NCBI GenBank assembly: GCA_047495785.1
Contig: JBLDXI010000064.1
Span: 248,001-312,000, forward strand
Length of the DNA: 64,000 nt
Origin: Lepidodermella squamata
Lineage: Eukaryota > Animalia > Gastrotricha
Direction: 5' to 3'
Every line of letters starts with the position of its first letter. Positions within the stretch are counted from its first letter, which is position 1. The notes beneath the pieces were generated by a model. That model worked only from the letters and a program-made list of their open reading frames with translations, was not told the DNA's origin and did not search any database. The position numbers were made by a program, and so were the translations under genes. Positions 31,081-64,000 of this stretch are shown here, one piece after another.

Positions 31081-33362
31081 TCAAGAAATATTTGTTAATT
31101 GAGCACAGTGAAATAGTGACAAATTAGCTCGACTCGCGCCTCGTGAAATCAGCACATCTGCCACAGTAGTTCTATCTTGACATATTGCGAGAACTAGAGC
31201 ATTATGGCCATTGATATTTCTGACATTCATCCTAGCACCTCTATCTAGCAGCAGTTGAGCAAGATCGGTCAACCCAAGCATAGACGCATGCATCAAAGAC
31301 GTGTTGCCATTGTTGTCAACGACCTCGATGGCAGCATTACGATCAAGAAGCAGTCGAACTGTATCGACCTTTCGTCGCATTGCGTTTGTAAGGAACCACT
31401 ATTTAAAATTTCACGATGGATTTCTTATGAATAATAATGATTGAGTAGCTCCTTTCAAACGCAACGCGACGCTTTCCAGTCACAGCAGCATTCAACAACG
31501 CCTTCGAGCCGTCAGTATCTTTAACATCGATGTCTGGTCGAATTTGCCATCCGTGGACTCGTCGATTTCCGCAATGAGTTGCCGCACCTGTGATACGTCG
31601 TCCGTAAAGGCTGTTACACTCCACAACTGCTCGTACATTTCCCCAATCTATACACGTGGACGAGATTGATTATAGGATAACGGATAACCATGAAGATTCC
31701 CGACACGCTGTATACCAAGCATAATTAATAAAAACATAGACTATGGAGGAATCTGCTCTACTTACGGACAGGTTCTTACTGTTTAGAGTTTTCTTACTAA
31801 ATTTTTTAAGGAATCGCTTTAATCTAGCGCTACACCAGAAAGAAATCACCGTAATTCATTTATCAAAAGAATGAATTTAGTTTCGGTATCTGAATTCATG
31901 GGGAAAAATTCATGGACATTAATTTAATTCCAAAAACTCAAAATCACCCAAATTCTGGGGCACAATTTTCGAGCAGATATACAAGAACTATCCTATTGTT
32001 TTATCCCATGGTTGGTGCTTAGCTGGCCGTTTATTGACAATCGAAAATCAAATCAAATCGATGGTCCAATACAAAGCAGAAGGCTTCAAAGCTGGAAACC
32101 CCAAGAGGGGTGCAAACGCCACGCATCAATAAATCGAATTAATTACGATAAAATTCTGCGTAATTTTCTGAATATGGGCTCATCACAACTTCAAGAGCCA
32201 GGCTTATGAATTTTGATAAATTTTCGAAAGACGACTTTTTTGACCAAATTGAGGTCTGAGCTACATTCTGAGCTACATATATATCATTACTTATGTTCCT
32301 CAATTTTTGGTGTAAAAAGCTAGAATAGCTGACCATCATGTTAGTCTGATTGGTTGAAAATCAGAGGCTAAGCCTGAACGCCTACTGCCTACTGGGAGGA
32401 CTGTTTAGTGCGTTCACCCTTCTTTGAAGCCTTTTGCTTTGTGAGGGACCTGAATCGATAGCAATACGATTTTATCGATTTTAACGATAGAACTAATCAT
32501 ACAAGTATGAAACAGGGTGACAGGGTTCGAGCGGCCGCGGGAATACTCTGTCGAGCAGTTCTGATAAGATCGAACTTGAAGATCCACCTTTCTGGGGATC
32601 TCAGGAAGCCCAGCTGAAATACGAAATAGCACGGGAAAGTAATTCTTATCGAAAATAGTAGTATTGAGACCTACTGTTTGCAAAATGACCCCAGCCAACC
32701 GCGACCGCCGAATCACATCCGTCGATGGAATTCGCTGTATCTGAAATGTCTTGGCACATGGCACTCGCGTCGGGTAAACATATTGGTCTGATCTCCTGTG
32801 AGAATCTGGGGACAGGGCTCATCAATCGCAGTAGAGCGAAATCATAGTCATAGAAATTCCGCCGCCCATCGTATAGCGGATGAACCAAAGGTGGCAGGGA
32901 CACAAAAGATTCGTATGAGGCTTTCTCCGAACGAACACTTATGTTGTGCCGACCTAGCAACGCTTTGATCCTGTAACAGCTAACATTAGACCATCAAACG
33001 GGGGAAATTACGAAAGATTACAAAATCGGCGTCTCCCCAGCATTCCAAACGCAATGAGCAGCTGTAATCAGCCATTGCCTCGATATGAGAGACGCTCCGC
33101 AATGTAAGGTTGACGTTTTGCCGCTGTTATAAATTTCAAGGAAGACCTAGCTCAACATCTCGCTTTTGCTCAGTTGAATGCATTTGGCTCAGTTTGAACT
33201 AACCAACCATGGGTAGTCATGTGCCTTTACTCGCTGACTGCCCGGGCCTCCTGATTTCGCCACAGCAGTGGGGCTCGCAATTCCACATTCGAGATCATGG
33301 GAATCATCTAATCCGAATACCAAACCAAGGAAAACTGTGGTGATAGTTGTGAGATGGCGCAT
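31081..33362 (-). pseudogene. Protease-CCP-ankyrin paralog, internally deleted
   Basis: Signal exon ending YPWL, TAAHC exon and DFALL exon present. Exon 4 breaks off near 32518 before GDSGG and the CCP-coding sequence is absent. Ankyrin exon starts tag|IGEMYEQLW, is frameshifted and ends with the C-cap AICQ..RGASRA. Confidence 0.85.
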
Positions 33363-36914: not shown

Positions 36915-37162
36915 CAGTGTGCGACTTTCAGGGGGGGATGGGGGGGATCATCCTCCCCAGCTCGGCCGGGCCAGACAGCAAAATGAGAATGTATCCCACG
37001 GTCTTGTTAATTTTGGAAGGTTCTGGGGCGTGTTTTAGTGAAAAATCTCCAAAATTTTCTCGCTTCGCTCGGTTATTAGCAGAAATGACTCGTCATTTTG
37101 GCAAAAACAGCAAACAAATTTTTTCCATCCCCGGGAGTTCGGGGATCGAAGATCGCACCCTG
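36915..37162 (-). mobile_element. hAT-like MITE
   Basis: TIR cagtgtgcga / tcgcaccctg; 8-bp TSD gaatcatc at 36907-36914 and 37163-37170. Confidence 0.88.
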
Positions 37163-37170
37163 GAATCATC

Positions 37171-38027
37171 TCCTCGGGACGTTATCATGGAATCCATCCA
37201 GCCATCGTTATCTTTCGCATCGACCGCAGCGTTTCGATCTAGTAACAGTCGATCAACTGCGATTTGCCCTTTCAAAAAAGCTCTCATCAATGCTGTAAAG
37301 CCATCGTTATCTTTCGCCTCAGTTGAAGTGTTACGGTCCAGCAACAGTTGAACTACTGCGACTTGCCCTTTCGGAACAGCACTCATCAACGCTGTTAAGC
37401 CATCGTTATCTTTCGCTTCAATTGAAGCGTTACGGTCCAGCAACAGCCGTACCACTTCGATTCGCCCCGCCGCAACTGCATAGATCAACGCGGTCCAGCC
37501 ATCGTTATCTTTCGCATCGACCGCAGCGTTTCGATCTAGCAACAGTCTAACTAATGCGACTTGCCCGCTATTCGCTGCATACATCAACCCTGTCACGCCA
37601 TCGTTAACTTTGGCCTGGATAGAAGCGTTCCGGTCCAGTAGCAGTTGTGTTGCTGCGACTTCCCCTGTCGTAATTGCATGCATCAACGGCGTGAAGCTCT
37701 TGTTATCGTTTGCCTCGTTGGCAGCCTTGCGATTCAACAAGAGTCGTAAAGCTTCGATTCGCCTATTCATGGCCGCATGCATCAACGCCGTCCAGCCCTT
37801 GATATCCCTAGCCTCTATATTAGCATTTCGATTTTTCTACTTCGGTTTTTCCAGCATTGACAGGAAACATCAACGCCGTAGAGCCTAACTTATTGTATGC
37901 CTCGATAGAAGCGTTCTCGAATATCACCGGCAAAACAGCTCTAGATTTCGCATTTTGTCAAAACAAAACAGCCGTGGCCGATCTTTTGAGGTCGCGAGGA
38001 GCAAGCCGAGCAATATCAACATGTTGA
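37171..38027. pseudogene. Orphan ankyrin fragment: about 6-7 internal repeats on minus (about 37190-37920) abutting a C-cap on plus (about 37920-38027)
   Basis: LLLDRNA.(I/V).AKDNDG repeats on minus with a frameshift near 37830; plus strand GKTALDFAFCQNKTAVADLLRSRGASRAISTC*. Confidence 0.8.
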
Positions 38028-38813: not shown

Positions 38814-41800
38814 TTAGTAGACTAGAATTTCAGAGAATGACATAGGCATGGCGCCTGATTTTTCGATGCGAATGTATCGCCCCAGCAGCGGAGGCGTGCA
38901 GTACATCGTCAGCGATTGGCCGATCACCAAATTCGGGAAGCGATAGCCCCGATAGATATCGCAAATAGGACTAAGCGCTGCACCGGCCGAGCCATCGCCG
39001 ACTCGGGAGAGGACTTCGTAACTCACCGCACTGATTAAATCAACAGTAATATACGAAACCGTAGGACTTATTTTCGATACGTAAATGGACTGGCCAATGT
39101 CGATTAGAAACCAAAAATCAGTGCTGTACCCCCCGCCGCTGCCTGATGGGTAAAATGAGCCATCACTCATGTTGGCGTTGAGCGAAGCCGGAAAGGTCGA
39201 TGTGACTTTCTTGAACAGAGCATAATTCGTCCCAGTTTCAGTGCTAGCTTCAACTTTACAAATTAAAATGATGGCCTCGCGAGAAATAGATATCACGTTG
39301 ACGTAACGGCCCGATACGGGTGGGAAACAAGGCACGGACACTCTAGCGTCATAAGGAACGTCAGGGTCGCCAACATTGCAGTTCGTCAATGCTGCATCAG
39401 CGTACCAAGTCGGGACGCTGTTGGAAACAGCGACTCTCATGTCTGTAATGGCGTATTCAACATCGGCGTAGGTGCAGCCCTTGAAGCTAAACCGTCCTAT
39501 CGGCTGTAGTGTGTAATCGTCAACGTACAGCCGAACGGCGAATGCAACTAGAGCTGGTTTAAGGTAGTTGACGAAAGGCTCAGAATTCGGGCCACTGGAA
39601 GGTCCATCGAAAATTCTAATTCTCGACCCATTGTTCCCGGTGTAAGCTACCCATTTGCTACTGTCGCCCTTAAGCCGAGATGCCAGGTGATACTTTTCAA
39701 TCCAGGCCGCCAGGGTAGCGCTGGATTGAACCGCGACAATGTTGATGATTTTCAGCTCCGTGAATGTTATCTGAAAATACGGCTGACGATCTGTGGCCAG
39801 CGGGATCCAGTCTGAGTTGCCGATGTCATTCCTGCTCAAATCGCTAGGAGTTGTTGCACTCGATGCAGTTTCTACGGATTCGCTATCGTAAAGCTCAATG
39901 TTGCAAAATTGATCTAAAGAGTTTCGAAACATTATCACGGCCTAATTATAAGTAATTTTATAATCTTACGCGCGCAGCCTCGAACTCGCCATTTCAAACA
40001 GATTTGGCCGCTCCACGATTCAGGATGGAATCTGAGATGACGGGCTATGATGTGCGGCCTTATGAAGCTCCACTGAGTCGATGTTGAATCGTTGTTTGCA
40101 ACGAAAATCTATCAAACATTTATTTCATTTTTCGAGCAAGAAATATGTCGGGTTACTTTTGTTGACGATAGGCCGATGGCTCGATTGTAAAATGTTTTGA
40201 AGGTAACGTTATTAGTGCTGTAGGACAATCGATAGGTTCGGACGAAGCAGTTGTTCACCGAATCGCCAGATGTCGCAATCGATGTAACGATTTTCTGCTC
40301 GCCAAAGTCCAACGTTAGGAATTCCGTGTTAGACAAGGTTGCTGGAGTCCAAGCGCAGGCCATGGAGCCACGAACATCATCCGATCCAAGGCAAACGCCG
40401 TAGGGCGGGGAAGCAGAGGAGTAGTTTGAACTGTAAGTCCAGGCCGATGTGGATGACAGGTCGGACTCGCAAACGTGGCCCTCCACTGGAAGTGCAATAA
40501 TTTCGATATCCTCACTACAACTATTATACTTTTTTATCGCTTACATGTATTCGGCGTAGGAATTTGGTTAGCAAGCTCCATGGCTAGGAGTGAATCTGCT
40601 GGGCTTTGGTAGATTGCTAGCCAAGTCATCAGCCCTGTAAAGTACGCGCTGCTCGAGACATCCTAGATATGATGAATTATGTGTTGATGCTTGAAAATGC
40701 GCCTATCAAAATTTTTGATATTATACATGCTCATAAATACTAGAAGCGGCTCTAGGTATATCTTATGATACTGCTTTTTATTCTAGCAAACAAGAGCCCG
40801 GAAAATCTGAGAATCAAATACAAATTGTATATTTCCCAATTAATTGTTCACGACCAAGTCGAACTTATGAAAATGTACAGCGTATACAATTACTATGACA
40901 GAAGACATGATTAGCTCCCTATCAGTTAGTGTTGCCTATGACCTTTCGCCAGCCCTCATTCCGAGGTTGAACATACCAGGTCAGGTTTCCCTACAACTTT
41001 AGCCTATTTCTAGCGTGAATTTTCGGAAAATATTACGATGTTGAAAAATCAGACCTACCCTTCCTATGAAGAGGCTATTCGTGTCACCAGGAATACAGTC
41101 GCCGAAGCTTTGCGTTGCCCCAGCCACGCCGTCACGGTAGCCAGTGATGCGATGAGCGCCTGCTGTGAAATCAACGTTCAACAGCAGGTGCTGCCAGCGA
41201 TTAACAGCCGCGTTGCCTATATCGTTCGCAGTCTGCACTCCATTGCAACTCACAGTGTAGGATATCGACATGTCCGCCGAGTTGTAGAGCAGCTGGAGAA
41301 GAGGAGATGTACCCATGGCCAGCTGGAATATAGGCTGGCTGCCAGCTGTGAAATTTGGAAACATCATTGCATGGATTGCCACGGTATAGGATGGCAGAGG
41401 TGCAGATCGGTTGAAGCCGACCTTGTAGCTACTGAGGTATGAAGCCACGCTCAGTGAATTAGCGGCGGAAGGTGAGAATCGAAACACCTCCGTGTCACCC
41501 GTCGACCAAGGGAAGGCAGGTCCTCGAAGGGACGACCCAGCCGCAGTCAGCACATCACTTGTACCATCCACTGTAGACAGGCCGTTGTTGTAGTCGAAGG
41601 GTGTTAACAGGACGGCTTTCATTGTGCTGGTTAGCGGGCATCGCCTCGAAGAATGGGCGAATCTTCGCGTGAACACAACTGCGTTATACACTTGCACACA
41701 CGCATAGCTCGTCGGCTGGCTGTTGGCGCCTCCGATTCTGAAAAACGTCGCATCAGTTTGTATTCCAATACCGCCACAGCGATTTGACCACGAAGCAACG

Positions 41801-44800
41801 AATTCGCCCTCTTGGATCAGATAGGCGGTAGCCGTCCCTAATCTGTATTGAAATCCAACATAGTTCCACTGATTCAGCAACAGTTTTATCGGCGAAGTTA
41901 GCGTGAAAGGCGACGTTGCACCTTTGCAAAGAGCGACAAGTTGAAGGTAGCCGGTCGAGGATGCCCTCAATCCCACTGCAAAAGCTGTTGAATTCAACGC
42001 ATCCGTCCAGCCCATCAACAATCCGCCAAAACTAGCCGGTTTGAAATGAAACAGGAGAGTGACTGACCGGAGATAGACGGTGAAGCGGCTATTATCAGAG
42101 TTTACCCAGAGATAATCCATTTGAGAATTGAGCTTCAGCGCGCTAAATTAATAGAAAAAAACAACTGCTATTTTTTCGACGCAAGTTTTGAATTACGTGT
42201 TATTGTAGCTGAGCACATTGTCGCACGTCGGGTTTCCAACCGCTTTGAAAGCACTGCTCGGTGTGATAAGATCAGCTAGGTTGCAGGCTAACGGATACAG
42301 CACAGCAGGCGTCGGGGCTGCAAATTGTGATTAAATTTGAGCCAAGTTGCCTTTGAGCAAGAACTCACGAGTCCAAGGAGCTTGGGCACTTTGATCAATC
42401 TCAGCGTTGTCCAAAGCCCGCTTGTATATCTGGATGTGCGATAGCCTCCCGGTCCACGCGCCTCCCACCACGAGGTATGCATTCACTTTGACTGCAGTCG
42501 ATGTAAAGCAGCTGACCGCATAGATCCCGCGCATGATGCGATCGATGAAAGCACGAGCAATACCCGCGCGGCAGTCGAATGTCACAGCGGTGTGAACCCA
42601 GCGATTTTTATCGATGATAACATAACCCTGGGTTTTAGGGAAACTCACCGAGTCGTTGCATGCCCGAGATTGATCCACTAGAAATGTCCCGGTATCGTTA
42701 ATCCAAATTCGCATACACATACTAGGGAAAAGGGAAATATCTTGTCAATAGACAAGCGTGGGATACTGTGAATTCATCACCAAATTGAATTCATTGAATT
42801 CAGTACCAAAAATCATTGAATTTTGTACCAAGTTTTTCCAATCGGTTCAATCGAAGTCACAAATTTAAAGACCCAGAGTCTAACCCGAACCCTAACCCTA
42901 ACCCTAACCCTAGCCCTAACCTTAACAAGCTAAATAACGGAATAAACTCGTTAGGTATTGAATTAAATGAAATTTGGTGCCGCATAAAGATGTTCTCAAC
43001 AAGAGTCAATGCTGTGACTTACTTTCCTTGAGTTGAGCTGACCAAATTGAGAATGCCGCTCGTGTGCCAAACCCATGCTGAAAATGTCCAGCCATTATTT
43101 TTGTCAGCAGCCAAATAATCCATCGGTAGAAACATTTTGCCTGAGCCTGACCACGCGAGGGCTGACAGAGCTCGCCCAGTAACGCCTAAGCCGAATGTCA
43201 GCCCGGTTGAGTAGACGCCGTTGTTGCCATTGCCGCTCAGATCGTCAGCTCGGCGCAAGATGTCCAGAGGCCAGTAGCCATCTGGGACGAGTGTGAAGGC
43301 CGGGTCGAGTTGCGGGGTAGTAATTTCTACAGACGTGATAGTTTTCGTCTCACCCAAATCAATTGTAACGTAAGACCGCTGGAAAGGATCGCCACCACCT
43401 GATCGCAGCTTCGTGCAGTTTGTGATACTTCTCTCTCGGATGACACGGTCGCTAGTCAAAACTGAGGCACCAGGCAGCCCAAGCAAGGCATCAGTCGCTA
43501 GGTCATACGCTTTGGCTATAGGAGCTTTGAAGGCAATATTCGATGTATACCTTGGGATAGTTTTACAGCCAAGCAGCTCGATTTTGTAACAAGGCTTCGC
43601 GCCAGAGAATGAAATCGGCTCAATCCTGAAGTATTGCGCAACAATCGGCCTCGGGAAGACAACTGTTGCGATCTTCATCGCGTCGATGTTACCCGTTAAA
43701 GCAGCTTGGCCATTATTGTCCTGCAGCTCAGCCCAGTTATCGCCCGAACTTGCCTTGTAGCCTAAACTAAAGACTTGGACCCAAGAATTAAGCATGGCAC
43801 AGCCCTGAATTTGAACAGCAGTGACCACGGTCTGTTTTCTCAAGTCGATTACCAATGGCATGCTGTTAGCATACGCAGCCAGGCCCCAATTCAGCCGTGA
43901 GTAATACGGCTTTGCTACTGCAACAATTTCAGTCGAAATTTGAGAATCTTCAATTTCATTAGTTTCCATGCCTAGAGGCTCGAAGCAATTAGCTGGAGAG
44001 CCCTTAACTGCCACTTTAGCTTTGCTTTGAACACTCGTTCTATTCTCGAATGTATTTGTAAATCTGACATGCTTTGTAAGAACTGGTCGGAAAGGCGTGA
44101 AAATCGTAGTTTTGCCGCTGATAGGATTCCAGAATCTGTTCTCACCGTGGCCATTATCAATCGATTGAAAGGCCAAACCATCAAAACTCCACTCTAATTT
44201 CACCTTTAGTAAACAGTCGAACCTGCAGTAAAACTGGAATTCCGTCATCCAAACGAAGCGTTGGAGATCGATTTTAAACCAAGTACCAACGGGAGGATTG
44301 TTGGCGAACCCGAAGTAATGCGGATGATTTTCGTAGAGATGACCAAGCGGCGGCTTCTCGTCGCTATAAGCAGAGCTCGAAGAGTAACCCAAGTCAGTTA
44401 CGTAAGAATTGTCAAAGTCAACAATTTCACCGCCTGAAACTTGCAGCAACAAGCTAGGCGCGGTCCACGCTGATTTGAGTATTGCATCCCATGTCGCTGT
44501 TACCGCACAAGAAGATTTCGTCGAACACTGGCGCGATTTCTTCATCAGACCCTGCGATGCCACTGAGAACGAAGTTGCGTCTGCATTTGCTAGGACTTGG
44601 GCAATTGCCGAGCCAGGCAAGTCAAAGCTCCATAGGTCGCAGGTTTGGTTAGTCGCCGTGAATTGACCAGACCTACAGAGCTCGTTCGAATTACACGAAG
44701 TCATGCAGTTTACGGCTGATTGAACTGAGCTTAGATTTCCAACGAGGTGGATCGAGAGGTTGTAGCCGGCCTTAACTGGGCCGAAGGCCATTCCGGGGTA

Positions 44801-44866
44801 GATGTTGTAGTGATAACCTCCCGCAGCAACGCAGTGGCATAGCGCGGCCGTTAGAAGCAAAATCAT
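38814..44866 (-). CDS. Large secreted mosaic protein (about 1695 aa): PAN/apple-like, discoidin (F5/8 type C) x2, LamG/pentraxin-like domains, discoidin x2, C-terminal galactose-binding/fucolectin-like domain
   Basis: 8 exons (43023-44866, 42369-42721, 42197-42317, 41059-42142, 40545-40662, 40157-40485, 39970-40108, 38814-39913) total 5088 nt in frame. Motifs C..SC....CRS.QF....C.L; PLGME..I.DSQI; IDL..VTAVQIQG; WVHTAVTFD; WFLIDIG; GRYIRI..FSEILVY. No TM segment seen. Confidence 0.88.
42881..42921. repeat. Short interstitial (CCCTAA)n/(TTAGGG)n tract inside an intronic repeat element
   Basis: taacccgaaccctaaccctaaccctaaccctagccctaacc. Its flank (ttgaattcagtacc..cattgaattttgtaccaa) recurs near 19755-19795. 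Confidence 0.75.
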
Positions 44867-47536: not shown

Positions 47537-50500
47537 TCAACATATAAATTTTGCCCGACTAGCTCCTCGTGAAATCAGCAAATATGCCACATTAGTCTTT
47601 TTCAGGCATATAGCGTAATCTAGAGCATTATAGCCTTTCGCATTTATAATATTCACGTTTGCACCTCTATCCAGCAGCAGCCGAGCAACATCGGCCCACC
47701 CCTGCATAGCCGCATGTATCAACGCCGTTTGGCCTTCATTACTCATGGCATCGATGGCTGCTTTGCGATCGAGCAACAGTCCAACCACTTCGACTTGCCC
47801 ATCCCGAGCCGCATATATCAAAGCTGTCCAGCCATCATAATCTTTAGCCTCGATGGAGGCGTGGCGATCCAAAAGCAGTCGAACGGTATCGACATGCCCA
47901 TTTGCAGCCGTCTCCATCAACGCCGTCGTGCCATTTATGGTATTGACGTCAATGGAGGCGTTGCGATCGAGCAGCAGTCGTACAGCCTCGACCTGGCCAT
48001 ACATGGCCGCATAAATCAACGCCCTGTACCCATCATCATCTGTAGCCTCGATGTCAGCTTTGCGATCCAGCAACAGCCTAACTATTTCAACGTTTCCTTG
48101 CTGGGCGGCGTACATAAGAGCGGTTTTGCCAATGTTATCTTTGGCTTCCTTAGCTGCTTTGCGATCCAATAGCAGTCGCACTGCATCGACATGATTAAAC
48201 GCAGCCGCATATATCAAAACTGTCAAGCCATTAATATCTTTAGCCTCGATAGAGGCGTGGCGATCCAAAAGCAGTCGAACTACTTCGATATGTCCATGCC
48301 ATGCCGCAATCATCAATGCCGTCGCGCTATATTTATCCTTGGCCTCAATGGAAGCGTTGCGATCTAGTAGCAGTCGTACAGCCTCGACCTGGCCATACAT
48401 GGCCGCATAAATCAACGCAGTACAGCCATTTTTTTCTTTGGCCTCCACGTTTGCTTTGCGATCTAGCAACAGTCGAACTACTTCGACTTGCCCATCCCGA
48501 GCCGCATATATCAAAGCTGTCCAGCCATCATCATCTTTAGCCTCAATGGAAGCGTTGCGATCGAGCAGCAGTCGTACAGCCTCAACCTTTCCGAAAATAG
48601 CCGCTTCCAGCAATGCTGTCGTGCCATTGTTATTTTTTGCCTCGATGGCAGCTTTGCGATCTAACAAGATCCGCACAGCTTCAACATGTCCCTTCGATGC
48701 CGCCCGCGTTAACGCCGTCCAACCATCGTTATTCTTGGCTTCGATAGTTGCTTTGCGATCGAGCAACAGCCGAACCACTTCCATTTTTCCCCTCGAAGCA
48801 GCAAGAATAAGCGCCGTGTTGCCAACGTTATCTGTTTCGTCGATGGAAGCGTTGCGATCCAATAACAGTCGCACAGCTTCAACATGCCCAAACAACGCCG
48901 TCCACATCAACGCCGTCCAGCCGTTGTTGTCCTTTGCATCGACGGCAGCATTACGATCCAGTAAAAGACGCACTACTTCGATTTCTCCTTCCACAACAGC
49001 AAAAGTCAGTGCTGTGTAGCCATTAGCATCACTAGCCTCGATGGAAGCGTTGCGATCGAGTAGCAGTCGTACAGCCTCGACCTGGCCCAATTTTGCCGCA
49101 AACATCAATGCCGTCGTGCCATTGTTATTTTTTGCCTCGATGTCAGCTTTGCGATCCAGCAGCAGCCTCATTATTTCAACGTTTCCTTTAAGTGCGGCGT
49201 AAATCAGCGCAGTCACGCCAGTGTTACTCCTGGCTTCAATAGCTGCTTTGCGATTCAATAATAGTCGCACGCTTTCGATTTTCTCTTGTAAAGCCGCTAG
49301 AATTAACGCTGTTGAACCATCGTTATCCCTGGCCTCGATAGCAGCGTTCCGATCCAATAACAGTCGGACAACTTCGATTCGCCCACTACGTGCTACGTGC
49401 ATCAATGCCGTCCGGCCTTCTTTGTCTTTGGCCTCGATGGCGGCCTTGCGATCTAACAACAGTCGAATTGTATCGACTGGCGCGTTTAAAGCCCCAAACA
49501 TCAAAGCCGTCATGCCCATGTTGTTCTTGGCCTCTAAATCAGCGTTCCGATCCAGCAACGTCCGCACTGCTTCGTTTTTCCCAGAGACAGTCGCATACAT
49601 CAAAGGTGTGGTGCCACTAATATGATCCTTAGCCTCTATCTGAGCGTTGCGATCCAATAGCAGTCGTAAAGCTTTAACCTGCCCCCTCGTTGTCGCAATA
49701 ATCAATGCTGTCAAGCCCCATTCATTCGTGGCCTCGATGGCAGCGTGGCGATCCAGTAACAGCCGAATGGCTTCGACCTGCCCAGCCCCAGCCGCAACCA
49801 TCAACGCCGTCAAGCCATCGTTATTTTTTGTCTCGATCGAAGCGTTCCGATCTAAAAAGAAGCGAACTACTTCGATTTGCCCATTGCCAGCCGCATACAT
49901 CAACGCCGTCGCGCCATTGCTATCCTTGGCCTCAATCGAAACATTCCGATCTAAAAACAAGCGAGCTACTTCGACCCGTCCATAACTAGCCGCAAACATT
50001 AACGCCGTCGTGCCATCGATATTCATTGCCTCGATCGAAGCATTACGGTCCATCAAGAGTCGAGCTGCTTCGACATCCCCATTAAAAGCCGCTGCCATCA
50101 ACGGCGTCCTGCCATAGCTACCCTCCTGGACATTCACATTAGCACCGCGGTCGAGAAACAGCCGAGCAATTTCCACTCGCTGTCCCGGTTTCTGATTGAT
50201 ACACGCCCAAATACTATGAAGCAGGGTGCTATTCTCTGTAATCCAAGTATCGCAGGTATATACATTGGGATTGCGCCAGTTCGGGTCGAACTTGCCGCCA
50301 GTGGATTCGTCGATCTCCTCAACAAGTTGCCGCACCTGCTCTACGTCACCTGTCTCAACTGTTACATTCCACAGTTGTTCGTACACTTCAGGGATCTAAA
50401 GAAAGATTGATTCCTCGAACTATTGCATTGCATTGTGAAACTCACAGGTCTTTGCTTTGCCGACACGCAAGAACCAGGCTGGGACCACGTGAAGTTCGAG

Positions 50501-53500
50501 AGGCACGAAATGGAAGCATTTCCTCGAATCTTAAAATCTTGGTCGCATGATATGCTTCGAACAGCCCCGACGCTCGATAGACCAGGCGCTATGGCGCCGT
50601 TTTTTATCGTCTGAACAGCAACGCAGCCTTTAGGGCACGCATTACAGATGGCGAGGGGAATAAAGCATTGACTTACCTGTACGGTTACACCTTCCAGTTA
50701 TCCCTGGACGGAATGGAGGAAAGCAAGAGGCGATTGATACAGATGCGGAGTACGTGAAACCAGGGTCGCATTTAACGCTCACCACCCCACCTCTCTCTAT
50801 CACCGTTCCAGGCCTTACAACTGAGCCAGTATCTTCCGAAGTTTCTGGGTCCACACGGGTTACAATTCCCGCTGTTATGTTTGGTATGACACAGGACTGC
50901 TGCTGAGTACTCAACTGGCTTCGAACTTCTATGTTCTCCGAAATCCAATCGAGAACCTTACAGACTCTGCTGTAGATGCCGGGGGTTTGCCCATTACATG
51001 TCTCATTGGCTTTAGAAATGATGCCAAGCAGGTATGTTTTTCTCGACATCAGGCACATAAGAGGGCCCCCAGAATCTCCAAAGCAAGCATTGCTGCCGTC
51101 AGCGGCTAAACACATTTTCGAATCGGTCATATTGACTGGATTCGAGCGGCCTCGGGAATACTCCATTGAACAATTTCGGTACGATCGAACTTGAAGATTG
51201 AGCTTCCTCGGGATCTCTGATATTCTGGCTGCAAAACATTAATGCTCTGTAACGATGTGCAACATAGCTAGCCCGTAAGCACCAGATAGAGAAAACTATG
51301 TTTTAGTTGCTGATTAGCCGATTTTCAAATTTTCTCTCTCGGATGAAAATCACCTGTAAACCTTGTTTGTTCTTTCTAGTTAAAGCGCTGATCTCTCCAT
51401 TCCATTTTTCATTTTTCATTTTCATATTCCAAGCCATCTTCATTGCGTCTTTATCATCTGCTCACGGAATATCTGTTTTTCATTGTGAAATTCCATTTTT
51501 CTAATCTCAAATTAATTATCACCCCTCTGAAATTATTTATGCCTTGGTCCTAAAATCAGTCGGCCACTGTGTTGACCATTGTTCGGATTAAAATCAGACC
51601 GGCGGATTTTATGAGCGAGCCGCCGGTCTGATTTGTCTTAACTCGAACGAAGGTCAACTCAGTAGCCGTCAGATGGCAGAGCAAAAATTAAGACAACCCA
51701 AAAAGAGACAGGACAAAAAAATAGGTTAAGGAGAAAATGGCGAAAATAGAGCATGCTCCAACAAATTCCTGGCTTAGGTAAAGGTAAAAGGCCACGTTGA
51801 AAATAGCAAAAAATTAACTAAAATGGCTTGGCTAATGGAAAAGAGCTCAATATTGAATCGAGACAATAATTCGTTCTAATTTGATTTGAGCAATTCACCC
51901 CGTTTTCTACGCAGAGATTCAGAATAATTCCAGAATTCAAGAGATTAGAACAGGTTTGAGGGAAAGACACCGTTCTCATTCATTTTAGATTAATTTGTTC
52001 AACGTGATCAAAATTTTTGGATTTGCCAATTGCCAATTTTCGATCAGCTGGTGCTTTAATTTGAAATCAAACGGCAATGAACGGGCAATGCCGTGAATAT
52101 CGAATTGCAGGCCGGAAAGAGTAATAGGGTTAGATCCCTCTATAAATTTTAGGAGCAGTTTGATGGCAACTGAAATTTATCGCCTAAAACTGTATTTAAA
52201 CAAAAAACGGAATTGTTTTTACACTAGATAATATAGAGCTAGGTCTGACAATCTACATCACCTGAAAGCTAAATAATTACTGAAAATACCTGAAATTGAG
52301 CCGTTCTTGCCACCTTCGGTTAAAAAGAATCTATTCAAACCTCCAAAACTCAGCTTAAAACATGCTAGTAGCTTTCGAATCAAAATTCTGAAAAATGAAG
52401 CCCGACTAATGTTTACGAAGTCCATGTGTCTTAGTCCAAAGGAAAAAAAAATCAGTCTCTTTTCCGTCGTGACGCGGATTACTACTAGGACAAGTCGCAG
52501 ATGGGTGATAATAAGTATATTGCCTTATTTGTAATTTTAGGCAATATACTAAGGCAATATATTATAAATAAGAAGAATTTCACAATGAAAAAGTGAATTT
52601 TCCGCTAGCAGATGAAAAAGACCCATTGTTGGCTGCATCAAATTTCGAACTAAGTTGATTACCGACTCGAAGTTTAAGAACAAGGCGTTCTCGAATGGGA
52701 TCAGAGAATTCCCTACACCCCCATACAACGACCTACTTCAGAGATAATATAGCAAATAAAAAATTGTCATGCCCAAACAATTTCGGAAAATCAAAATAAA
52801 ACATTTACGGGACACATTTTTATCTACGGGAAGCGAAAATTCTCAGCACGGATAAACCTATTTTTCAAATTTTCAAAAAATTACCAACCACGGCAGATGA
52901 ATGGCGATTTTGCGAAAAACCAAAATTATAGCCCTTTTTGGCGGCTTTTAGACTATTGTCCGTATTTTTGGAATTAATTAAAATCATAATTCGCGGATGG
53001 GGGTTAGGTTGCCTAGAAAGTAATCGCGTGCCGCACTCTTTGCAAATTAAGCTCGAATATATTCACTATGGGAAGATTGTTAGTTCCCTATCTCCTATCT
53101 GTTACAGTATTTTCTATGGCTATTAGTTATTACCCAATTCCTGTATACGAGAATGACCTACTGCGAGAAAAATGACCCCAGCCAACTGCGACCGCAGAGT
53201 CGCATCCGTCAATTGAATCCGCAGTGAACGAGTTGGACCGACACATTGAAGTCGCTTCAGGTAAGCAAATCGGCCGTATCTGCTGTGTGAATCTTGAAAC
53301 TGGGCTCGTCAACCGTAAGAGAGCGAAATCAAAGTCGTAGAAATTCTGACTTCCGTTGTAAAGCGGGTGAACTAAAGGCGGCAGAGTCACAAGAGATTCG
53401 AAAGATGGTGTTTCCGACCGAATACTGATATTATGTCGACCTAGAGACGCTTTTATCCTGTTCAAACATAGAATAGAATATAAGTTAGAAGGGGATTAAT

Positions 53501-53850
53501 AATTTAGAAAACCCACAAAACGGGCGTATTTCTGTTTTTCCAAACGCAATGAGCAGCTGTTATCAGCCATTGCCGCGAAATAAGAGACGCTCCGCAATAC
53601 GACGCCGATGTTTCGTAATAAATCTCCAGTGAGACCTTAGAAAAGCATCATTTTTCAGTTCAATTGTATATATGGAAATCATTGCATTTAGGCAAACCAG
53701 CCATGGGTATTCATTTGGTTCTGTCGGGTGACTGCCTGGATCGCTTGATTTCGGCATTGTAGTAGCGATTACAGTACCGCATCCGAGATCTTGAGCGATG
53801 ACAACGCTGGAAATCAGCTCAAGGAAGGCCATAGCTTTAGGAAGATGCAT
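47537..53850 (-). CDS. Secreted serine protease-CCP-CCP-ankyrin repeat fusion, long form (about 1386 aa, 25 internal ankyrin repeats plus caps)
   Basis: Exons 53698-53850, 53517-53635, 53162-53457, 50677-51228, 50446-50627, 47537-50395 total 4161 nt in frame, all GT-AG. Triad TAAHC/DFALL/GDSGGP. 50-nt phase-0 intron joins ..CVSAKQRP to IPEVYEQLW. Confidence 0.9.
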
Positions 53851-54146: not shown

Positions 54147-54335
54147 CAGGGTGCGATCTTCGATCCGCGAGCTCCCGGGGAAGGAAACAATTTTTTTGCT
54201 GTTTTTGCCAAAATGACGAGTCATTTCGGCTAATAACCGAGCAAAGCGAGAAAATTTTGGAGATTTTCCACCAAAACACGCCCCAGAGCCTTCCAAAATT
54301 AACAAAACAGTGGGATAAATTCTCATTTTGTTGTC
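54147..54335 (+). mobile_element. Partial hAT-like MITE (family of 36915-37162)
   Basis: Starts cagggtgcgatcttcgatccc; closely similar to the reverse complement of about 36975-37162. Confidence 0.8.
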
Positions 54336-55796
54336 TTTTGAGGATTTTCCACTAGAAAAGGCTCCGAAACCTCCTAAAAATGAGGTTACAGCAGTCTTTT
54401 CCAGGCGTTACTTCGATTTTGGTTGTAACATTTGGTCCGATTGGTTGTTACATTGTAACATGTGTAACATGCTAAAAAAACACTGGTAAAGGTGATAATT
54501 ATCAGCAAATATTGGAAGCAAAATTACCCCCCATAACAGTAAGCTGATTAGGGTTCATTTCAGTATAACCCCTGATCAGGGTGCATATTACCCCTTGATC
54601 AGCTATACTAATGACTAGGAGCTATGACCCCTGATCAGCCCCCTTATCAGGGGTTAATTTTTTCTAGTGTAGTTCAAAGACGTTTTAGTAAATTAAATGA
54701 CCGGAAACAAGTGGAAAATTGGGGTCTGGCAAATGTTTCGTATTTTCCAAAAAATCAAAAAAGCGCATAAAAATAGCATTTATTGCGCGAGGGATAGATA
54801 TAATGCAGCGTTTCCCAAACCGTGTCCTAATATAGGACACTCGTGTACTTTGCCAACTTTCAAGTGTCCTGTAGGACACTGGTGTCCTACGGGCCTCAAA
54901 ACGACAAAAGGGCAACAATAGATTCACAGTAAGAAACAATGCATTTTGGACCATATTCAGACTATGAATCGGGAAAAAACCGGCAGCTAAAGCTCGCTTC
55001 GCTCGCGCTTTGCCTATTTATGAACTGTCTTATGGCGGATACCTCCGTTCGGACGGGCACAGGTGCTTTCATCGTGGCATGGCCGTAAGCGTATTATGGC
55101 CGAATCTCTGATCAAGAGACGATATTAAACGTTAGGATTAATTTTTGAAACTGGCTTTGTTATTCAAGTACGTCACAGATTGTACTTGTCGACATGACTA
55201 ATCGAAATTTCCTAATTGAGAGCAAAAGCTCCAGACTGAATTTCTGTACAAATTTGTAAGACTTTTTACGGTGTTATGCGTCATTTTCCAGTGTCGATTT
55301 CTTAAAATTTCCTCGCTTCGCTCGTGGTTAGTTTAAATTTCACCTGGGATTTTCTCAATTTCGAGCTAGGTTGCCTTCAAAATTCTCTTCAATTTTTGCC
55401 AAACCCCACTTTTCACTTATTTCCGGTCAAATTATTATTACGCCACATTAGTTTATATTAATTAGGTAGAATGGTAAAATGGCGGAAATGAGTCATGCCT
55501 ATGTTATGCCTGCCGCAATACCATGAAGCTGCTTTAACTTCAAAAATGTCAACGGCTCACCCAACTACTGTAGTAAGGCCTGTTTCGCAATATACAGTAC
55601 CTATCAATTGTCATTGTTAACACTTATTTATAATCAAAACATCTACCCTGAGTATTGACGATAGCATGTTAACACGCTTTTATCTGTATCTTCTTAATAT
55701 TAATATTAAATTAGCAAAACACGATAGAAAAATTAATAGAATAAAATACTCGAAAGCTATTCTCACATAACGTTTTGCTGCATGCTGTAATTTGGC

Positions 55797-58700
55797 ATGC
55801 CCATTCTCAAAGCTATCACCTTGCTTGAGCTGATTTCTTGCGTTGCCATTGCTCAAGAATGCGGTACTGTAATCTCTACCTCAACGGCGAAATCCACAGG
55901 CCCGGGCAGTCATCCAGCAGAGGCACATGAATATCCATGGCTGGTTTGTAATTTTGAATCTGTTATTTTTTTTTATATAACCGAAAAAGATGTTTCTTGA
56001 AGGTCTTCCTTGAAATTTATCACAGCCGCGACACATCGGCCGCATATTGCGGCGCTTCTCTCATTTCGAGGCAATGGCTGATTACAGCTGCTCATTGCGT
56101 CTGGAATGCTGGAGAGACTCCAATTTTGTAAGATTTTTTGTTTTATTCTCTTATCAGATATGGCGAAACTTTTTTATTTACAGAATAAAAGCTATGATTG
56201 GGCGTCATAACATCAGTGTTCAATCAGAAAATGCCTCTCGCGAGTCTCTCGTGGTTCTGCCGCCTTTGCTTCATCCGCGATACAGTGGGAGTCGGAATTT
56301 CTACGACTTTGATTTCGCTCTCTTACGGTTAAGGAGCCCAGTTCCAAGATTCACACAGCAGATACGACCGATTTGTTTACCTGACGCGACTCTAATGTGT
56401 CGGTCCAACTCGTTCACTGCGGATTCAATTGACGGATGTGATTCGGCGGTCGCAGTTGGCTGGGGTCATTTTGCTCACAGTAGGTCATTATCTTAAACAG
56501 GAAATAATAGCTCGGTAATCGCTTGGATTTTTTTACTGTTCACGTAATTTGAATGTATTTTGTCTCTTCTATATGAAGATATGATCCTACGGATCTACGT
56601 CATTTCAGAAAATTAAAATCATTTTTATTTTAGCGATATTTCAGTACTCAACGCGTCATTTCAGAATCGTAAAACTCAGAAAAATGAATTTTGTAAATAT
56701 TTTGAATAACTCCGAAACTCAGAAAACTCAGAATTTATTTGAATTTTACTTCGAAAACTCCAAAATCTCCGAATATTATTTTACAAAATTATTCTAATAG
56801 CCTAGGACAACTTTTATAGGTCCAATCCGCCACTAGATCGGGATGACCTCAGACCCGTTCCATTTTGTGTTCGCGTGCCGAATAAAGTTATCCGGTCGTC
56901 GCCCGGGCCACTGCCATGTCGCACGTCATCCCCGTCCTGGTCAAGAGGCGGAAGATCATCATAGTCGTAGCGAGGGAAAATTGTCGAATTAAGAGGGACA
57001 TTTTGGTGATTTTCAACTGTGAGAATGAGAGAATTAGCAACTTCCATACATTTGCATCTGTTTATGGCACACCAGACATTTGTGTGAGCCTTCCAAACCC
57101 TCAAAAAATTCGGTGTTGACAAACTGAGGCAAGAATTTGACAAACTAGGCACGTGCCTCGTGTGCCCATGCGTTGAAACGGCCCTCGAAACCCCCCGATG
57201 CATCTCGAAGTAAATGATCGCAGCCCTCGTCGCAACTTTACTCGCCCGATTCTCCTTGGCCGACTACGACCGAAATTCTGGCTTCCGAAATCGGCCAGCG
57301 GCCCATCAGATTCAGAAGTGGAGACAGAGTTACGAGAAGGTGATGAAGCCCCATCAGATGACGCCTCGTGTTCTGAAATGACGCTCAGAATGATCATTAA
57401 TTAATTTTCCGAAGTGTCGTGTGCTGAATTTTCGCGAAATTTCAGATCAAAATTTCTGAAATGTCGTTACACGGATCCTAGCTCTCAAACCGGGGAAGGA
57501 ACGGCGAAGAATGACAATTCAGCTACGTAGCCTAGTGGGTAATTCTCAACTCCGGTCTGTCTAATTCTTATAGTTTCAAGTAACTCAGTGCCTCAATTTA
57601 AATGACATTAGGTTTCTAGAGGCGCGATGCATATGCTCCCATGTTTTATAGCCCTTTTAATTAGCTTCATCGTTGTTTCCCTTCAGCTAGGCTCTCTGAG
57701 ATCCCGAGGAAGCTAGACCTTCAAGCTCGATCGTACCGAAACTGCTCAATGGAGTATTCCCAAGGCCGATTGGATCCGGTCAACATCACCGACTCGAAGA
57801 TGTGTTTCGCTGCCGATAAAAGCGACGTTTGCTTTGGAGATTCCGGTGGCCCTCTCATGTGTATGAAATCAAGGCAGACTTACCTGCTAGGCATTATTTC
57901 GAATGGAGATGATTCATGCAAAGGATACACTCCTGGCATCTACAGCAGAGTCTGCATGGTTCTCGATTGGATTTCGGAAAACACTGATGTTCGAAGCCAG
58001 ACGAGCACTCCCGATCAGTCTTGTACCGTACCGAATATCACCGCGGGATTTGTAACTCGAGTGGACCCAGAAACTTCGGAAGATTCTAATGAAGTTCTAA
58101 GACCTGGAACAATCGTGGAAAGTGGTGAAACTGTCGGCATCAAATGCAACCCTGGTTTCTCGTACTCCGAGTCCATCTCGACTGCATCGTGCTTGCCTCC
58201 ATTCCTTCCGGGGATTAATGGAAGGTGTAACCGTACAAGTAAGCAAATGCAGCGTTTTCTTTAATATATGACGCCATTTTTGCCTCCAAGGCTGTGGTGC
58301 CGTTCGGACCGTTCAAAACGGCTACGTAGCGCCTGGTCTATCGGGAGTTGGAGCCACCAGGAACATATCATGCAAACAACATTTTGTGATTCGCGGAAGT
58401 GCTTCCATACTGTGCCTCTCGAACTTCACGTGGTCGCAGCCTGGTTCCTGCGTGCCGGCAAAGCGAAGACCTGTCAGTTTTCTACAAAGATTCACTTCAT
58501 TTTTTCAAACAGTTTCGTCTTACCCAATTCTTGTTTGGCACAGAAACAAAAAACAAAATGTCATTTATTACTTTTATTTACCTAAATTCACTTTTGTGGA
58601 ACAAAATTTGGCTCCGTTCCCTACCGTTCCCTACCAGTGCCGGATTTTCCATTAGGCAAACAAGGCAATTGCCTTAGGGCCCCGCGATTTTCGGGCCCTT

Positions 58701-61078
58701 CAAATCCAAAGGGGGACCCTTATGCCCCAAGGGCCCCCATATTTTTTTACTCTAGTTTGAAAATTCCACCTTTTGATTTGTGAAAACGGCTTCAACGGTC
58801 AATTTTTCGGCCTTTGGACGGAGCTTTTGGATAACAATTTTGAAAAAATGTGCTCGCTTCGCTCGCACTCGTCTACTTTTTCCAGTCCGGTCTAAACTCT
58901 CCGAACAAACCTTACAAATCTGTAAGGCTGTATGCTCTAAAAATCTGGCACTATTGTGTGCAGGAAGCATTCGCATTATAAAACGAATCAATCAAACCCT
59001 GAACTTAACGTAATGTTGCTATTGGTATAAGAGTTCTAAATCACTATATTTTTCCTGCATGTTATCAATGTGAAAACTAAAAATTTTAAGTTATCAGCAA
59101 AAATTCAAGATAAAAGGTCTTTTCAAGTAAAAGGTTGGGGAAACTAGTATTTTGTCCATTTTAAAGTGAGTTTGGCGGGCTTTTTTCATTGAAAAAATCC
59201 CGAAATTTGCTCGCTTCGCTCGAATTAATTGGTTCAAATTACATGTAATCTCCACAAAAGCCGCGGCAAAGTTTTCAGCTAAAAAAGTGGTCCAATTGGG
59301 TCTAGCTCTCAGGTGGTATATTCAGTCATTCAACTGTACCTAACAACTGTTTGAATTTAAAATCAAAACAGTGCTCCGGGTACGGGGGGTAAGGGGGGAA
59401 AACGACCCCCCCCCCCCTTGGCGTTCGAAAGTTTCTGAAAAACGTAAGGGTCCTCCCTGTTGATTTGCAAATTTTGGGCTCAAAATAGCTCCATTTACCC
59501 CCCTCAGAGCTGGACCTAGTCGGATCACTGAATCAAAATCTAAATTTAATCGGAAAACCAGGTAATATGTACATAATCTTATGGTGTCAGTGCCGGATAT
59601 TCCCAGCTTGAAATTCCTCGGGGCCCTAGGAAATTGGATATTTGTTAATTATATTTTGCCGTGGCTTTGGTTGAGATTAGCACATGTAATTTGAACCAAT
59701 TAATAAAAAGTATTTAATACCAATCAATAAGGGAAGCGAGCAAATTTTGGGCTTTTTCAATAAAAATAGCCCCAAACCCTCTTAAAAATATCCAAAGTGC
59801 TCATTTGCTTTGTCTTTTTCTTGAATTTCGGCTGTCTACTTCCAAATTTCGGTTTTCACATTGGTAAAATGCAGGAAAATAACATGATTTAACTCTTCAA
59901 ATTGTTTCAAAATTGTGGTCCAAACGCATTAGAGTCCAATAACTATGTCCTCCTTACGGCACTGTAATCAGTTGTCAATTGTGCTATGCCTTCATCTTTA
60001 GGTTCGTGAAGTGTACGAGCAATTGTGGAATGTATCATCATTGACGGGCGATGTGGCGCAGGTGCGGCGACTCGTCGCGGAGATCGACGAATCCACTGGC
60101 GGCAAGTTCGACCCGAACTGGCGCAACCCTAACGTTTCTTACTGCGATACTTGGACTACACAGAATGGCACCCTGCTTCATAGCGTTTGGCTGTGTTCAA
60201 ATCGAAAATCGGACCAACGACTGGAAATTGTTCGGCTGTTGCTTGACCGCGGGGCTGATGTGAATGCCAAGGAGGGTGCCGCTGGCAAGACGGTGTTGAT
60301 GGCAGCGGCAATTATTGGGGATTCAGATTCAGCTCGCCTGCTGCTGGATCGCAGAGCTGACATTGAGGCTACAGATGACACTGGCTACACGGCGTTGATT
60401 CATGCGGCAAAGGAAGTGCAAGTGGAAGCAGTACGGCTATTACTCGATCGCAACGCTTCAATCGATGCCGGTGATATCGAAGGCTTCACGGCATTGATGG
60501 CAGCGGCTAATAATGACAAATTCGAAGTGGTACGGCTGTTACTGGATCGCAATGCAGCCATCAATGCCACGGATGTAAATGGCTTGACAGCGTTGATGAA
60601 TGTGGCTAAGAACCGGCAAGTCGAAACTGTTCGACTATTACTAAGTTTCAGGCCTGACATTGAGGCGAAGGATGCAGATGGCGCGACGGCGCTTTTACAT
60701 GCCTCTAGTAGAGGGAATGTCGAAATTATGCGCGTTTTGCTTGATCGGAACGCTTCTATCGAAGCTCGGAATAACAAAGGCGAGACAGGGTTAATGAGCG
60801 CGTCTGTGGTTGGAAATGTTGCCGCTGTAAAACTGTTGCTGGATCGCAACGCTTCCATTGAGGCCAAGGATAACAATGGCGAAACAGCGCTGAGCTATGC
60901 GGTTTTGTTCGACCGCGTCGAAGCCATTCGACTGTTACTAGATAGAGGAGCTAATATGAATGTCATAAATATCTATGGCTTGTCGGTTCTAGATACTGCA
61001 GTTTGTGATGAAAGAATAGCTTCGGCCAATCTGCTGAGGTCGCGAGGAGCAATTCGAACAAAGTCGCCATGTCGTTAG
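55797..61078 (+). CDS. Secreted serine protease-CCP-CCP-ankyrin repeat fusion, short form (about 792 aa, 7 internal repeats plus caps)
   Basis: Exons 55797-55943, 56003-56127, 56184-56479, 57687-58238, 58291-58472, 60002-61078 total 2379 nt in frame. Same intron phases and exon 3-5 lengths as the minus copy; ..CVPAKRRP joins VREVYEQLW. Confidence 0.88.
59369..59530. mobile_element. hAT-like MITE in intron 5
   Basis: TIR cagtgctccg / cggatcactg; 8-bp TSD aatcaaaa. Confidence 0.85.
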
Positions 61079-62815: not shown

Positions 62816-64000
62816 TCATTCAACATAGGTTTCGCACACTCCGTAGCCCAAACGATTGCCGCAAGGAAAAAATGCCATCAAAGATTGAATGACCCCGCAT
62901 TTAGTAACATCTTTCGGAGACTGAAACAGCGTTTGATTGAATGTGAGAGCCGAACCGTCTGACCATTTAAGGACGCCGGACTCTGGAGCAAGGCCCACCC
63001 AAGCGCTGTCGCCGTTGGGTGCAACGCTGCCAACCAGGGCAAGGTCGGCAGCCGTTTTGACAGTTGCCAAGATGCCATCCAGTTGCGAGCAATATAAAGC
63101 GGCATCCTGGTGATTTATCCCATCAACGCCATTGCCAACCGAGAACAGCTGCTTTCGAGCGTTTTGACACTTCGATTCGCTGCTGAACAGAACATTTGCA
63201 GGAAAACGTTTCTCAGTGTTGTCGCCACAGCCGCTTGAGCTCGGCCGGCAGGTTACTGAACCATCGGCAGTTAGCAGGCAGCGATGAAAAGTGGTCTAAT
63301 AAAAAGAAAATATCAATCATTTGCCTACGAGTTCGTCCCGCGGTAAATAGGGCGTATTATAGCGCAAAAAACTGAAGTTCAGAAGTTCATTTTTCGCACA
63401 AGGTTATAGAGCCAAACAGTTCACGCTGCCTGGTATACATTTTGTTTGAAGAAAATTTGAGTTATCAGCATAAGAAAAAGAAATGAGCCATAGCTTTTCT
63501 AGCTGCCCTACAACGGTGGTTTTAATCTGTTTACTAAATTGTGGGAATCTCAAAATCTCCAACACAATTATGTTGTTAAAAAAAACCGAAATTCAATTAC
63601 CAATCAAATCATACAAAATCACTAATAAACGGAAAATGGCTGATGATCCGTTTTAATTCATGGTACATCAACACGCGTTGAATTTTTCAAATTTCGAAAA
63701 CCTGAAATTTTCAAAGAAATAAACTCACCGGAGGCGATATATCAGTCATGCATTTGTCGTGATTCAGCTGAAAGGTGACCAAGTTTGAGAACAGCTTAAC
63801 CTGTTATAGAGAAGCAGTTGCTACCGGAAAATCCGTGCTTTTGGTTCAGCGTTACCCGAATTTGATTTAGGGGACAAGCGGCTTAGCAAGACTGACGGTT
63901 AGATGAATCTTTGCACGAAACGGCATTCTGACAACCGAGAGTAAATGCCCCAATTGCGAAAACAGAAGAATAACTACTTACTCCGAGCAGGCAAGCTGCG
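62816..64000 (-). CDS. 3' part of another Cys-repeat + C-type lectin-like gene (5' end beyond the window)
   Basis: Exons NAVSCKDSSNRQSC.., VKLFSNLVTFQLNHDKC.., last exon FHRCLLTADGSVTCRPSSSGC..WVGL..LKWSDGS..CG..C..GVCETYVE*. Confidence 0.8.

Follow-up and report, generated by a model that had tools for sequence, protein, structure and literature searches.

The 64,000-nucleotide stretch analysed here (the window; all coordinates count from its first letter) comes from contig JBLDXI010000064.1 of the gastrotrich Lepidodermella squamata (assembly GCA_047495785.1, positions 248,001 to 312,000 of the forward strand). It contains copies, here called A to D, of a family in which a trypsin-like protease, Sushi modules, and an ankyrin-repeat array appear to be joined. 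We focus on gene C, on the minus strand, whose array combines a rigid repeat framework with a highly variable face. Its ankyrin exon (47537..50395, including the stop codon at 47537-47539) encodes an N-cap region and a C-cap with 25 internal repeats between them, as delimited by the open reading frame (ORF), the repeat register, Pfam, and the splice acceptor ...TTTAG at 50396. The open frame (47537..50386) runs for 949 amino acids without interruption. The internal 33-residue repeats (47645..50122; ORF residues 89-914) are evident from the per-position entropy table and from Tandem Repeats Finder (period 99, 66-67% matches), and a single additional residue separates repeats 5 and 6. They are preceded by a family-specific N-terminal region (50123..50395) that carries conserved cysteines and no start methionine and is 71% identical to its counterpart in paralog D; its 88 residues close with a half-repeat cap, and the first methionine of the exon comes only at about residue 97. 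The C-terminal capping repeat (47540..47644), with two cysteines, is conserved in paralogs D and A. Pfam recognizes the array strongly (Ank_2, E = 8e-197; Ank, E = 4.8e-184, with 22 stretches), and the repeats have the 33-residue helix-turn-helix plus beta-hairpin form of the ankyrin families PF00023/PF12796. Relative to the family motif, G-x-T-P-L-H-x-A-A ... L-L-x-x-G-A, they carry TAL(M/I) in place of TPLH and N, K, or H in place of the G of GA.

Upstream of the array, and separated from it by a 50-nucleotide phase-0 intron read from the sequence (50396..50445, GTGAGT...TTTAG), lie the exons of a protease with Sushi, or complement control protein (CCP), modules, all on the minus strand. We recognized such modules by a length of about 60 residues, four cysteines, and a conserved tryptophan; the second module (50446..50637; Pfam Sushi E = 1.9e-7, 31.8 bits versus a cut-off of 20.7) has these features, and the first is weak (E = 0.063, under the cut-off). 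The latter shares the exon at 50645..51166 with the C-terminal part of the trypsin domain (Pfam Trypsin, E = 7e-14), which includes GDSGGP. Two further trypsin exons contain the region of the catalytic Asp (53130..53465, E = 6.3e-7) and the catalytic His (53507..53647, E = 1.4e-7), the latter also identified from its translation. Together, TAAHC, DFALL, and GDSGGP in successive exons give the His-Asp-Ser order of an S1 (trypsin-like) protease. Exon 1 lies within a stop-to-stop ORF (53563..53850) whose translation begins with Met at 53850 and has a hydrophobic, signal-like N-terminus; the tail of this ORF overlaps the His exon in a different frame. The canonical IVGG activation motif is absent from this region (53700-53850), where the expected site reads ...DPGSHPTEPNEYPW..., so zymogen cleavage may depart from the usual. 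An in-phase junction between Sushi and ankyrin exons is also present in paralog D, there with a 1.5-kb intron. The protease, the CCP-CCP pair, and the ankyrin array thus appear to form one fused gene, as supported by the sequence of two copies.

Paralog D lies on the plus strand. Its protease and Sushi exons (55668..58480), found by self-BLAST, are colinear with those of gene C at 74-77% nucleotide identity, and its ankyrin exon (60002..61078; ORF 60011..61078), identified by Pfam and translation, comprises an N-cap, 7 internal repeats, and a C-cap. Both the count of 25 versus 7 internal repeats and the colinearity of the protease exons agree with what the initial annotation of this DNA had proposed. 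The other two copies, both on the minus strand, are partial. Fragment B (37093..37850) is probably a decayed copy: it has 6-7 ankyrin repeats and neither cap, its frame is shifted upstream, and a repeated element truncates it downstream. Copy A (31081..31380) retains the last two repeats only, beside degenerate protease exons (32414-33300) from which the GDSGGP part is missing. Repeat number clearly changes between gene copies. The repeated element adjoining the truncated fragment B is about 190 nucleotides long and probably a transposon remnant; it recurs at 84-93% identity (36973-37162, 54147-54336, and 19857-20060), and another of its copies lies just upstream of gene C.

To describe the variability of the array, we computed the entropy of each position over repeats 2-25 of gene C. 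Their consensus (D-N-N-G-T-T-A-L-M-Y-A-A-L-Y-G-Q-V-E-A-V-R-L-L-L-D-R-N-A-S-I-E-A-K) agrees with the 33-residue motif described in the initial annotation. Variability is strongly nonuniform, as that annotation had also held: it is concentrated at positions 14 (3.46 bits), 13 (3.41), 5 (3.40), 10 (2.73), 3 (2.68), 16 (2.60), and 2 (2.38), and framework positions mostly range from 0 to about 1 bit. L8, L24, and R26 show no variation at all, and G4, T6, R21, D25, and A28 each reach 0.25 bits. The dipeptides singled out earlier as variable in the first helix (FN, SY, GN, TR, LK, RD, MY, WH, and QQ) every one occur at positions 13-14. For a codon that is unconstrained and saturated, 24 samples should give 3.49 +/- 0.20 bits; positions 5, 13, and 14, at 3.40-3.46 bits, match this value and are therefore as variable as chance permits. 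Freedom is partial elsewhere on the face, in that position 10 stays aromatic (Y, F, or H) and positions 2-3 stay N or D. In designed ankyrin repeat proteins (DARPins), the exact randomized positions are reportedly 2, 3, 5, 13, 14, and 33, as said to have been set out by Binz et al. in 2003. This set holds four of the six most variable positions of gene C (hypergeometric p = 0.005). The earlier claim that variability falls on the DARPin positions thus stands for 2, 3, 5, 13, and 14 and not for the remainder: K predominates at position 33 (1.86 bits), R occupies position 26 throughout, and positions 10 and 16, though fixed in DARPins, vary here.

Two further regularities mark the repeats. An N-x-S sequon at positions 27-29 (DRNAS) recurs in 14/38 repeats across gene C (47537-50122, minus strand), paralog D (60275-61078, plus strand), and fragment B (37093-37785, minus strand), and N27 and S/T29 covary (Fisher p = 0.0035, a value inflated because the repeats are related). 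The sequon would fit N-glycosylation of a secreted array. Synonymous codons are also position specific in gene C (47645-50122, minus strand): Gly4 is GGC in 20 of 23 repeats, Gly15 is GGG or GGA, and Asp25-Arg26 is nearly always written GAT-CGC. Such codon use is either a trace of common ancestry or the result of a DNA or RNA constraint.

To place these positions on the ankyrin fold, we checked the register by in-register alignment to ankyrin-R/B (4rlv, E = 3.5e-132 and 4.6e-134). Positions 2, 3, and 5 were assigned to the beta-turn and positions 10, 13, and 14 to the inner helix from this alignment together with published descriptions (PMC4308713, PMC4986451). By homology with solved ankyrin domains, the variable positions would lie along the concave groove that the beta-turn and inner helix make up.

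We then compared the entropy profile with that of repeats from four unrelated ankyrin proteins (one from a sea anemone and three metagenomic). The profiles were correlated (Spearman's rho = 0.51-0.59 per protein, 0.64 pooled), and the face exceeded the remaining positions both in the unrelated ankyrins (2.66 versus 1.32 bits) and in gene C (2.87 versus 0.96 bits). The variable-face pattern of gene C is therefore the ordinary ankyrin pattern in kind, sharper in degree. What is unusual about the array is the rigidity of its framework: E18, R21, D25, and R26, exposed charged residues of the outer helix, show at most 0.9 bits in gene C versus 1.4-1.6 in the other ankyrins. Natural variability has also guided design. 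In the ANK-N5C library, positions 2, 3, 5, 10, and 13 were randomized for having the highest entropy among natural internal repeats (PMC4308713), and DARPins are built on the same consensus logic (PMC8683736). Because the designers picked the positions most variable in natural repeats, the coincidence with DARPins is built into the comparison. The initial annotation had read it as a sign of selection on a binding surface; since unrelated ankyrins share the profile, it is generic.

The repeats are old. Within gene C they share a mean identity of 64% at the nucleotide level and 57% at the amino acid level, and the best pair reaches 89% nucleotide identity. Pooled over all repeat pairs, the proportion of synonymous differences (pS) is 0.60, corresponding to a synonymous divergence (dS) of about 1.2. 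Where the amino acid agrees, so does the codon in 44% of comparisons within a repeat position and in 22% across positions. Synonymous sites are thus near saturation, not fully randomized. Across the protease, Sushi, and N-cap exons, genes C and D differ by a dS of 0.41-0.77, with a ratio of nonsynonymous to synonymous divergence (dN/dS) of 0.23. Because the synonymous divergence among repeats exceeds that between C and D, most repeats are older than the C/D duplication. With the identity and pS given above, the gene C repeats show no sign of concerted evolution; their likeness is upheld by selection at the protein level, not by homogenization. A tree built from 38 repeats groups C25, D7, and A1, each the penultimate repeat of its array, as a clade (support 95/97) and places all B repeats in one clade (95/91); about seven young sister pairs lie within C, and the repeats of D are interleaved with those of C. 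This topology points to an array history of birth and death of repeats. Paralog D probably lost repeats, because the common ancestor already carried a long array.

We estimated dN/dS in four ways: over all repeat pairs, over sister pairs, with a held-out dS, and with partitioned codon models on a fixed tree. As comparisons of repeats within a gene, these gauge paralogous divergence and not ongoing selection. Over all pairs, the ratio was 0.56-0.68 for the face and 0.19 for the framework, values that say little about positive selection because synonymous sites are near saturation. For eleven sister pairs, the a priori face gave 1.31 (Fisher p = 0.17) and the framework 0.40 (p = 5e-8 for a ratio below 1). 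Picking pairs by similarity deflates dS, so the bootstrap interval of the sister-pair ratio (1.12-1.54) is not trustworthy, and a held-out test was needed, with one half of the framework codons used to pick the pairs and the remaining half to measure dS. The pS was 0.22-0.29 in the selection half versus 0.37-0.43 in the held-out half. With the held-out dS, the ratio was 1.15 for the six a priori face positions and 0.8 for positions 2, 3, and 33. In the partitioned codon models, omega was 0.35 for the framework and 0.34-0.41 for control sets of variable framework positions; for the six face codons, the model with the best log-likelihood and Akaike information criterion (GY+FQ) gave omega = 1.15 (p = 0.54 against omega = 1). 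The face therefore evolves at about the synonymous rate, three to six times the framework rate, a result that is robust. Purifying selection acts strongly on the framework (dN/dS 0.19-0.40), and the binding face looks free of constraint.

Building on the observed anatomy, the exon joins as read from sequence, the entropy profile, the age of the repeats, and the dN/dS ratios, we infer secretion, groove binding, and docking, and we favour, with modest confidence, the reading in which the array serves a secreted protease as docking module, with a groove that differs per repeat and paralog through old duplications and unconstrained divergence of the face. The product of gene C would be a signal-peptide-bearing, trypsin-like protease with two Sushi/CCP modules and a C-terminal solenoid of 27 repeats. 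The framework of this solenoid is nearly invariant, the exposed charged residues of the outer helix included; each repeat accepts any residue at positions 5, 13, and 14 and is partly free at positions 2, 3, 10, and 16, giving a groove that differs in each repeat and paralog. By analogy with the 24-repeat membrane-binding domain of ankyrin, the array probably serves as the target-docking part and would grip an extended ligand along this groove. Its diversity would have arisen in the germline by birth and death, from ancient repeat duplications and a few younger ones, with the face diverging unconstrained (dN/dS about 1) while purifying selection held the framework, and with gain or loss of repeats leading to 25 versus 7. 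This proposed history includes no concerted evolution, no somatic assembly, and no demonstrable positive selection. Several points weigh against the docking reading. The signal peptide was judged by eye, without a predictor; an AlphaFold2 single-sequence model of the whole exon, which has a helix pair per 33 residues, reached only a moderate predicted local distance difference test score (pLDDT 65.7); and the mapping of the face relies on homology and the literature. No public RNA run contains the gene C locus, in support of either the exon joins or expression. With the held-out dS, positions 5, 13, and 14 alone gave a ratio of 1.5-1.7, and two worse-fitting codon models put the six face codons at omega = 2.7 (GY+F1X4, p = 0.0035) and 10.9 (GY+F3X4, p = 0.0017). 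Mild positive selection at the face is possible, not shown.

The unsaturated analyses, with face point estimates of at least 1 (1.31 for sister pairs, 1.5-1.7 and 2.7 as above), favour the diversifying selection that the initial annotation had proposed. Under it, the groove would serve recognition, whether in an arms race or in a repertoire directed at non-self; selection would favour amino acid replacements at positions 5, 13, and 14 as well as shifts in repeat number, and the family would be a germline-encoded variable receptor-protease system. The face is also rich in aromatic residues (24% F, W, or Y at positions 5, 10, 13, and 14), and several paralogs of unequal repeat number lie within one window. 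However, the signal depends on the model: the face omega moves from 1.15 to 10.9 with the codon-frequency model, of which FQ was retained as best fitting, and that model and the unbiased dS agree on a nonsignificant 1.15. The ratio is below 1 over all pairs, the repeats are old and not homogenized, the pattern is generic among ankyrin repeats, and recombination among repeats together with a weakly resolved tree would inflate the face tests. Of the predicted selective contrast, the low framework ratio is borne out and a face ratio above 1 is not established, the face being at about 1 (0.56-2.7, and 10.9, by method). We therefore consider diversifying selection rather unlikely. The fuller proposal, that the ankyrin arrays constitute a germline recognition repertoire in which selection at positions 5, 13, and 14 and repeat turnover produce new specificities with the protease as effector, strikes us as unlikely; such a repertoire would be an ankyrin-based counterpart of variable receptors built on leucine-rich repeats (LRR) or immunoglobulin domains. 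A long solenoid could instead act as a spacer, spring, or scaffold, as in NOMPC and ankyrin, in which case length matters and the groove is unbound. A face at dN/dS of about 1, with the entropy of an unconstrained codon, would accord with this structural role, as would the unusually strong conservation of the outer-helix charges and the presence of NOMPC among the best Protein Data Bank (PDB) matches. The aromatic position 10 and the N/D at positions 2-3, however, indicate partial constraint on the face, exposed hydrophobic and aromatic residues would be costly on an idle surface, and paralog D retains the same caps and face pattern with seven repeats, all of which makes a purely structural role distinctly unlikely. 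We regard as highly improbable that the ankyrin exon lies outside the protease gene, or that gene C is a pseudogene, its variation reflecting decay. The absence of the locus from RNA runs, the fragmentary state of the adjacent copies A and B, and a protease without the canonical IVGG activation N-terminus would suit such an artefact or dead gene; against it stand the intact 949-codon frame, a framework dN/dS significantly below 1, canonical in-phase splice signals at the same place in two paralogs that differ by a dS of 0.4-0.8, and complete catalytic motifs.

Among described systems, the nearest is that of fungal NOD-like receptors (NLRs), whose ankyrin (ANK), TPR, and WD domains include highly internally conserved repeats, as in HET-D/E of Podospora (Dyrka et al. 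2014, PMC4986451). Those arrays show more than 85% repeat identity, concerted evolution, repeat-number polymorphism between isolates, and significant positive selection (PMC4986451). Gene C resembles them in its long, near-consensus array, in variable sites on the concave face (inner helices and beta-hairpin), and in a repeat number that depends on the copy. It differs in that its repeats are, at 57% amino acid and 64% nucleotide identity, below the 85% level, in that the upstream partner is a trypsin-Sushi region and no nucleotide-binding NOD (NACHT/NB-ARC), and in that the host is an animal; of the features that define the fungal phenomenon, those we tested (>85% identity, concerted evolution, and a NOD) are absent. 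DARPins and ANK-N5C share with gene C a consensus-like 33-residue framework with caps and variable positions 2, 3, 5, 13, and 14 (plus 10 in ANK-N5C), located on the beta-turn and helix 1. The gene C array, unlike these designs, is natural, and it carries TAL(M/I) for TPLH, a position 33 that is mostly K, a fixed R at 26, and a variable position 16. The best match among solved structures was the 24-repeat membrane-binding domain of ankyrin-R/B (PDB 4RLV and 5Y4D; E = 3.5e-132), which likewise forms a long solenoid without breaks, similar in length, and binds extended peptides in its inner groove. Ankyrin, however, resides in the cytoplasm, and each of its repeats is conserved between species; the gene C array comes after a putative signal peptide, a protease, and Sushi modules and has cysteines in its caps and a recurrent NxS sequon.

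Likeness to extracellular systems is also partial. Lamprey variable lymphocyte receptors (VLRs) likewise build on a solenoid of repeats whose concave face and repeat number vary. They are produced by somatic assembly of cassettes into an incomplete germline gene, whereas gene C is whole in the germline, a single open exon encoding its 25 repeats together with both caps, and fragments A and B nearby look like decayed copies, frameshifted or cut short. The analogy with LRR-based variable receptors drawn in the initial annotation thus breaks down at the level of mechanism, since the germline already carries the full gene, its repeats are old, and nothing points to assembly from cassettes or to concerted evolution. 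Trypsin-fold proteases with Sushi/CCP modules are known from C1r, C1s, and the MASPs and from Limulus factor C, in which the CCP modules serve as substrate exosites. Those proteins carry their CCP modules ahead of the protease and lack ankyrin repeats; gene C has the order protease, CCP-CCP, ankyrin. The latrotoxins (PDB 7PTX and 9GO9, among the PDB matches) are animal proteins that act extracellularly and have about 20 ankyrin repeats. They are without protease or Sushi modules and without a near-consensus framework, and nothing indicates a toxin role for gene C.

Neither the family-specific N-cap nor the protease-Sushi exon had a relative in the protein collections and metagenome contigs searched. 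The N-cap search gave generic ankyrin matches only, with no homologue for the first ~50 residues, and giant ankyrin proteins dominated an exhaustive profile search that used the ankyrin exon of paralog D, in which residues 1-50 stayed uncovered. Two metagenome scans for relatives gave no match, and a literature search on secreted protease-ankyrin fusions yielded nothing relevant. A bacterial metagenome contig (L001:2510-5917) encodes an unrelated trypsin-ankyrin fusion, P0003, with a serpin gene directly after it; this is an independent case of a protease joined to ankyrin repeats. One public run contains the gene C locus as short unitigs (exact contigs at a depth of 25-38, plus many paralog contigs) and probably derives from the source sample. 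The joints listed in that run are cross-matches between repeats.

Beyond the family itself, the window region is rich in extracellular recognition-type domains. Between fragment B and gene C, a row of large minus-strand ORFs (38814-44866) carries F5/8 type C (discoidin), Laminin_G_3, and PAN domains; these ORFs probably belong to a single multi-exon gene whose product is secreted or adhesive. C-type-lectin-like ORFs occur at 3833-4186, 11921-12373, and 62816-63070 on the minus strand and at 36210-36827 on the plus strand. An interstitial, telomere-like repeat of the TTAGGG type, (CTAACC)x7.8, lies at 42880-42926.

Taken together, these results identify gene C as a very clean instance of the common ankyrin design, unusual in its setting, which is linked to a protease and apparently extracellular. 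It is a natural case of the fixed-framework, free-face arrangement that engineers built into DARPins, and because its synonymous sites are nearly saturated, purifying selection must have held that arrangement for a long time. We know of no described animal recognition system that combines extracellular ankyrin repeats with a protease effector; if the groove residues were selected for diversity, this gastrotrich family would be one.

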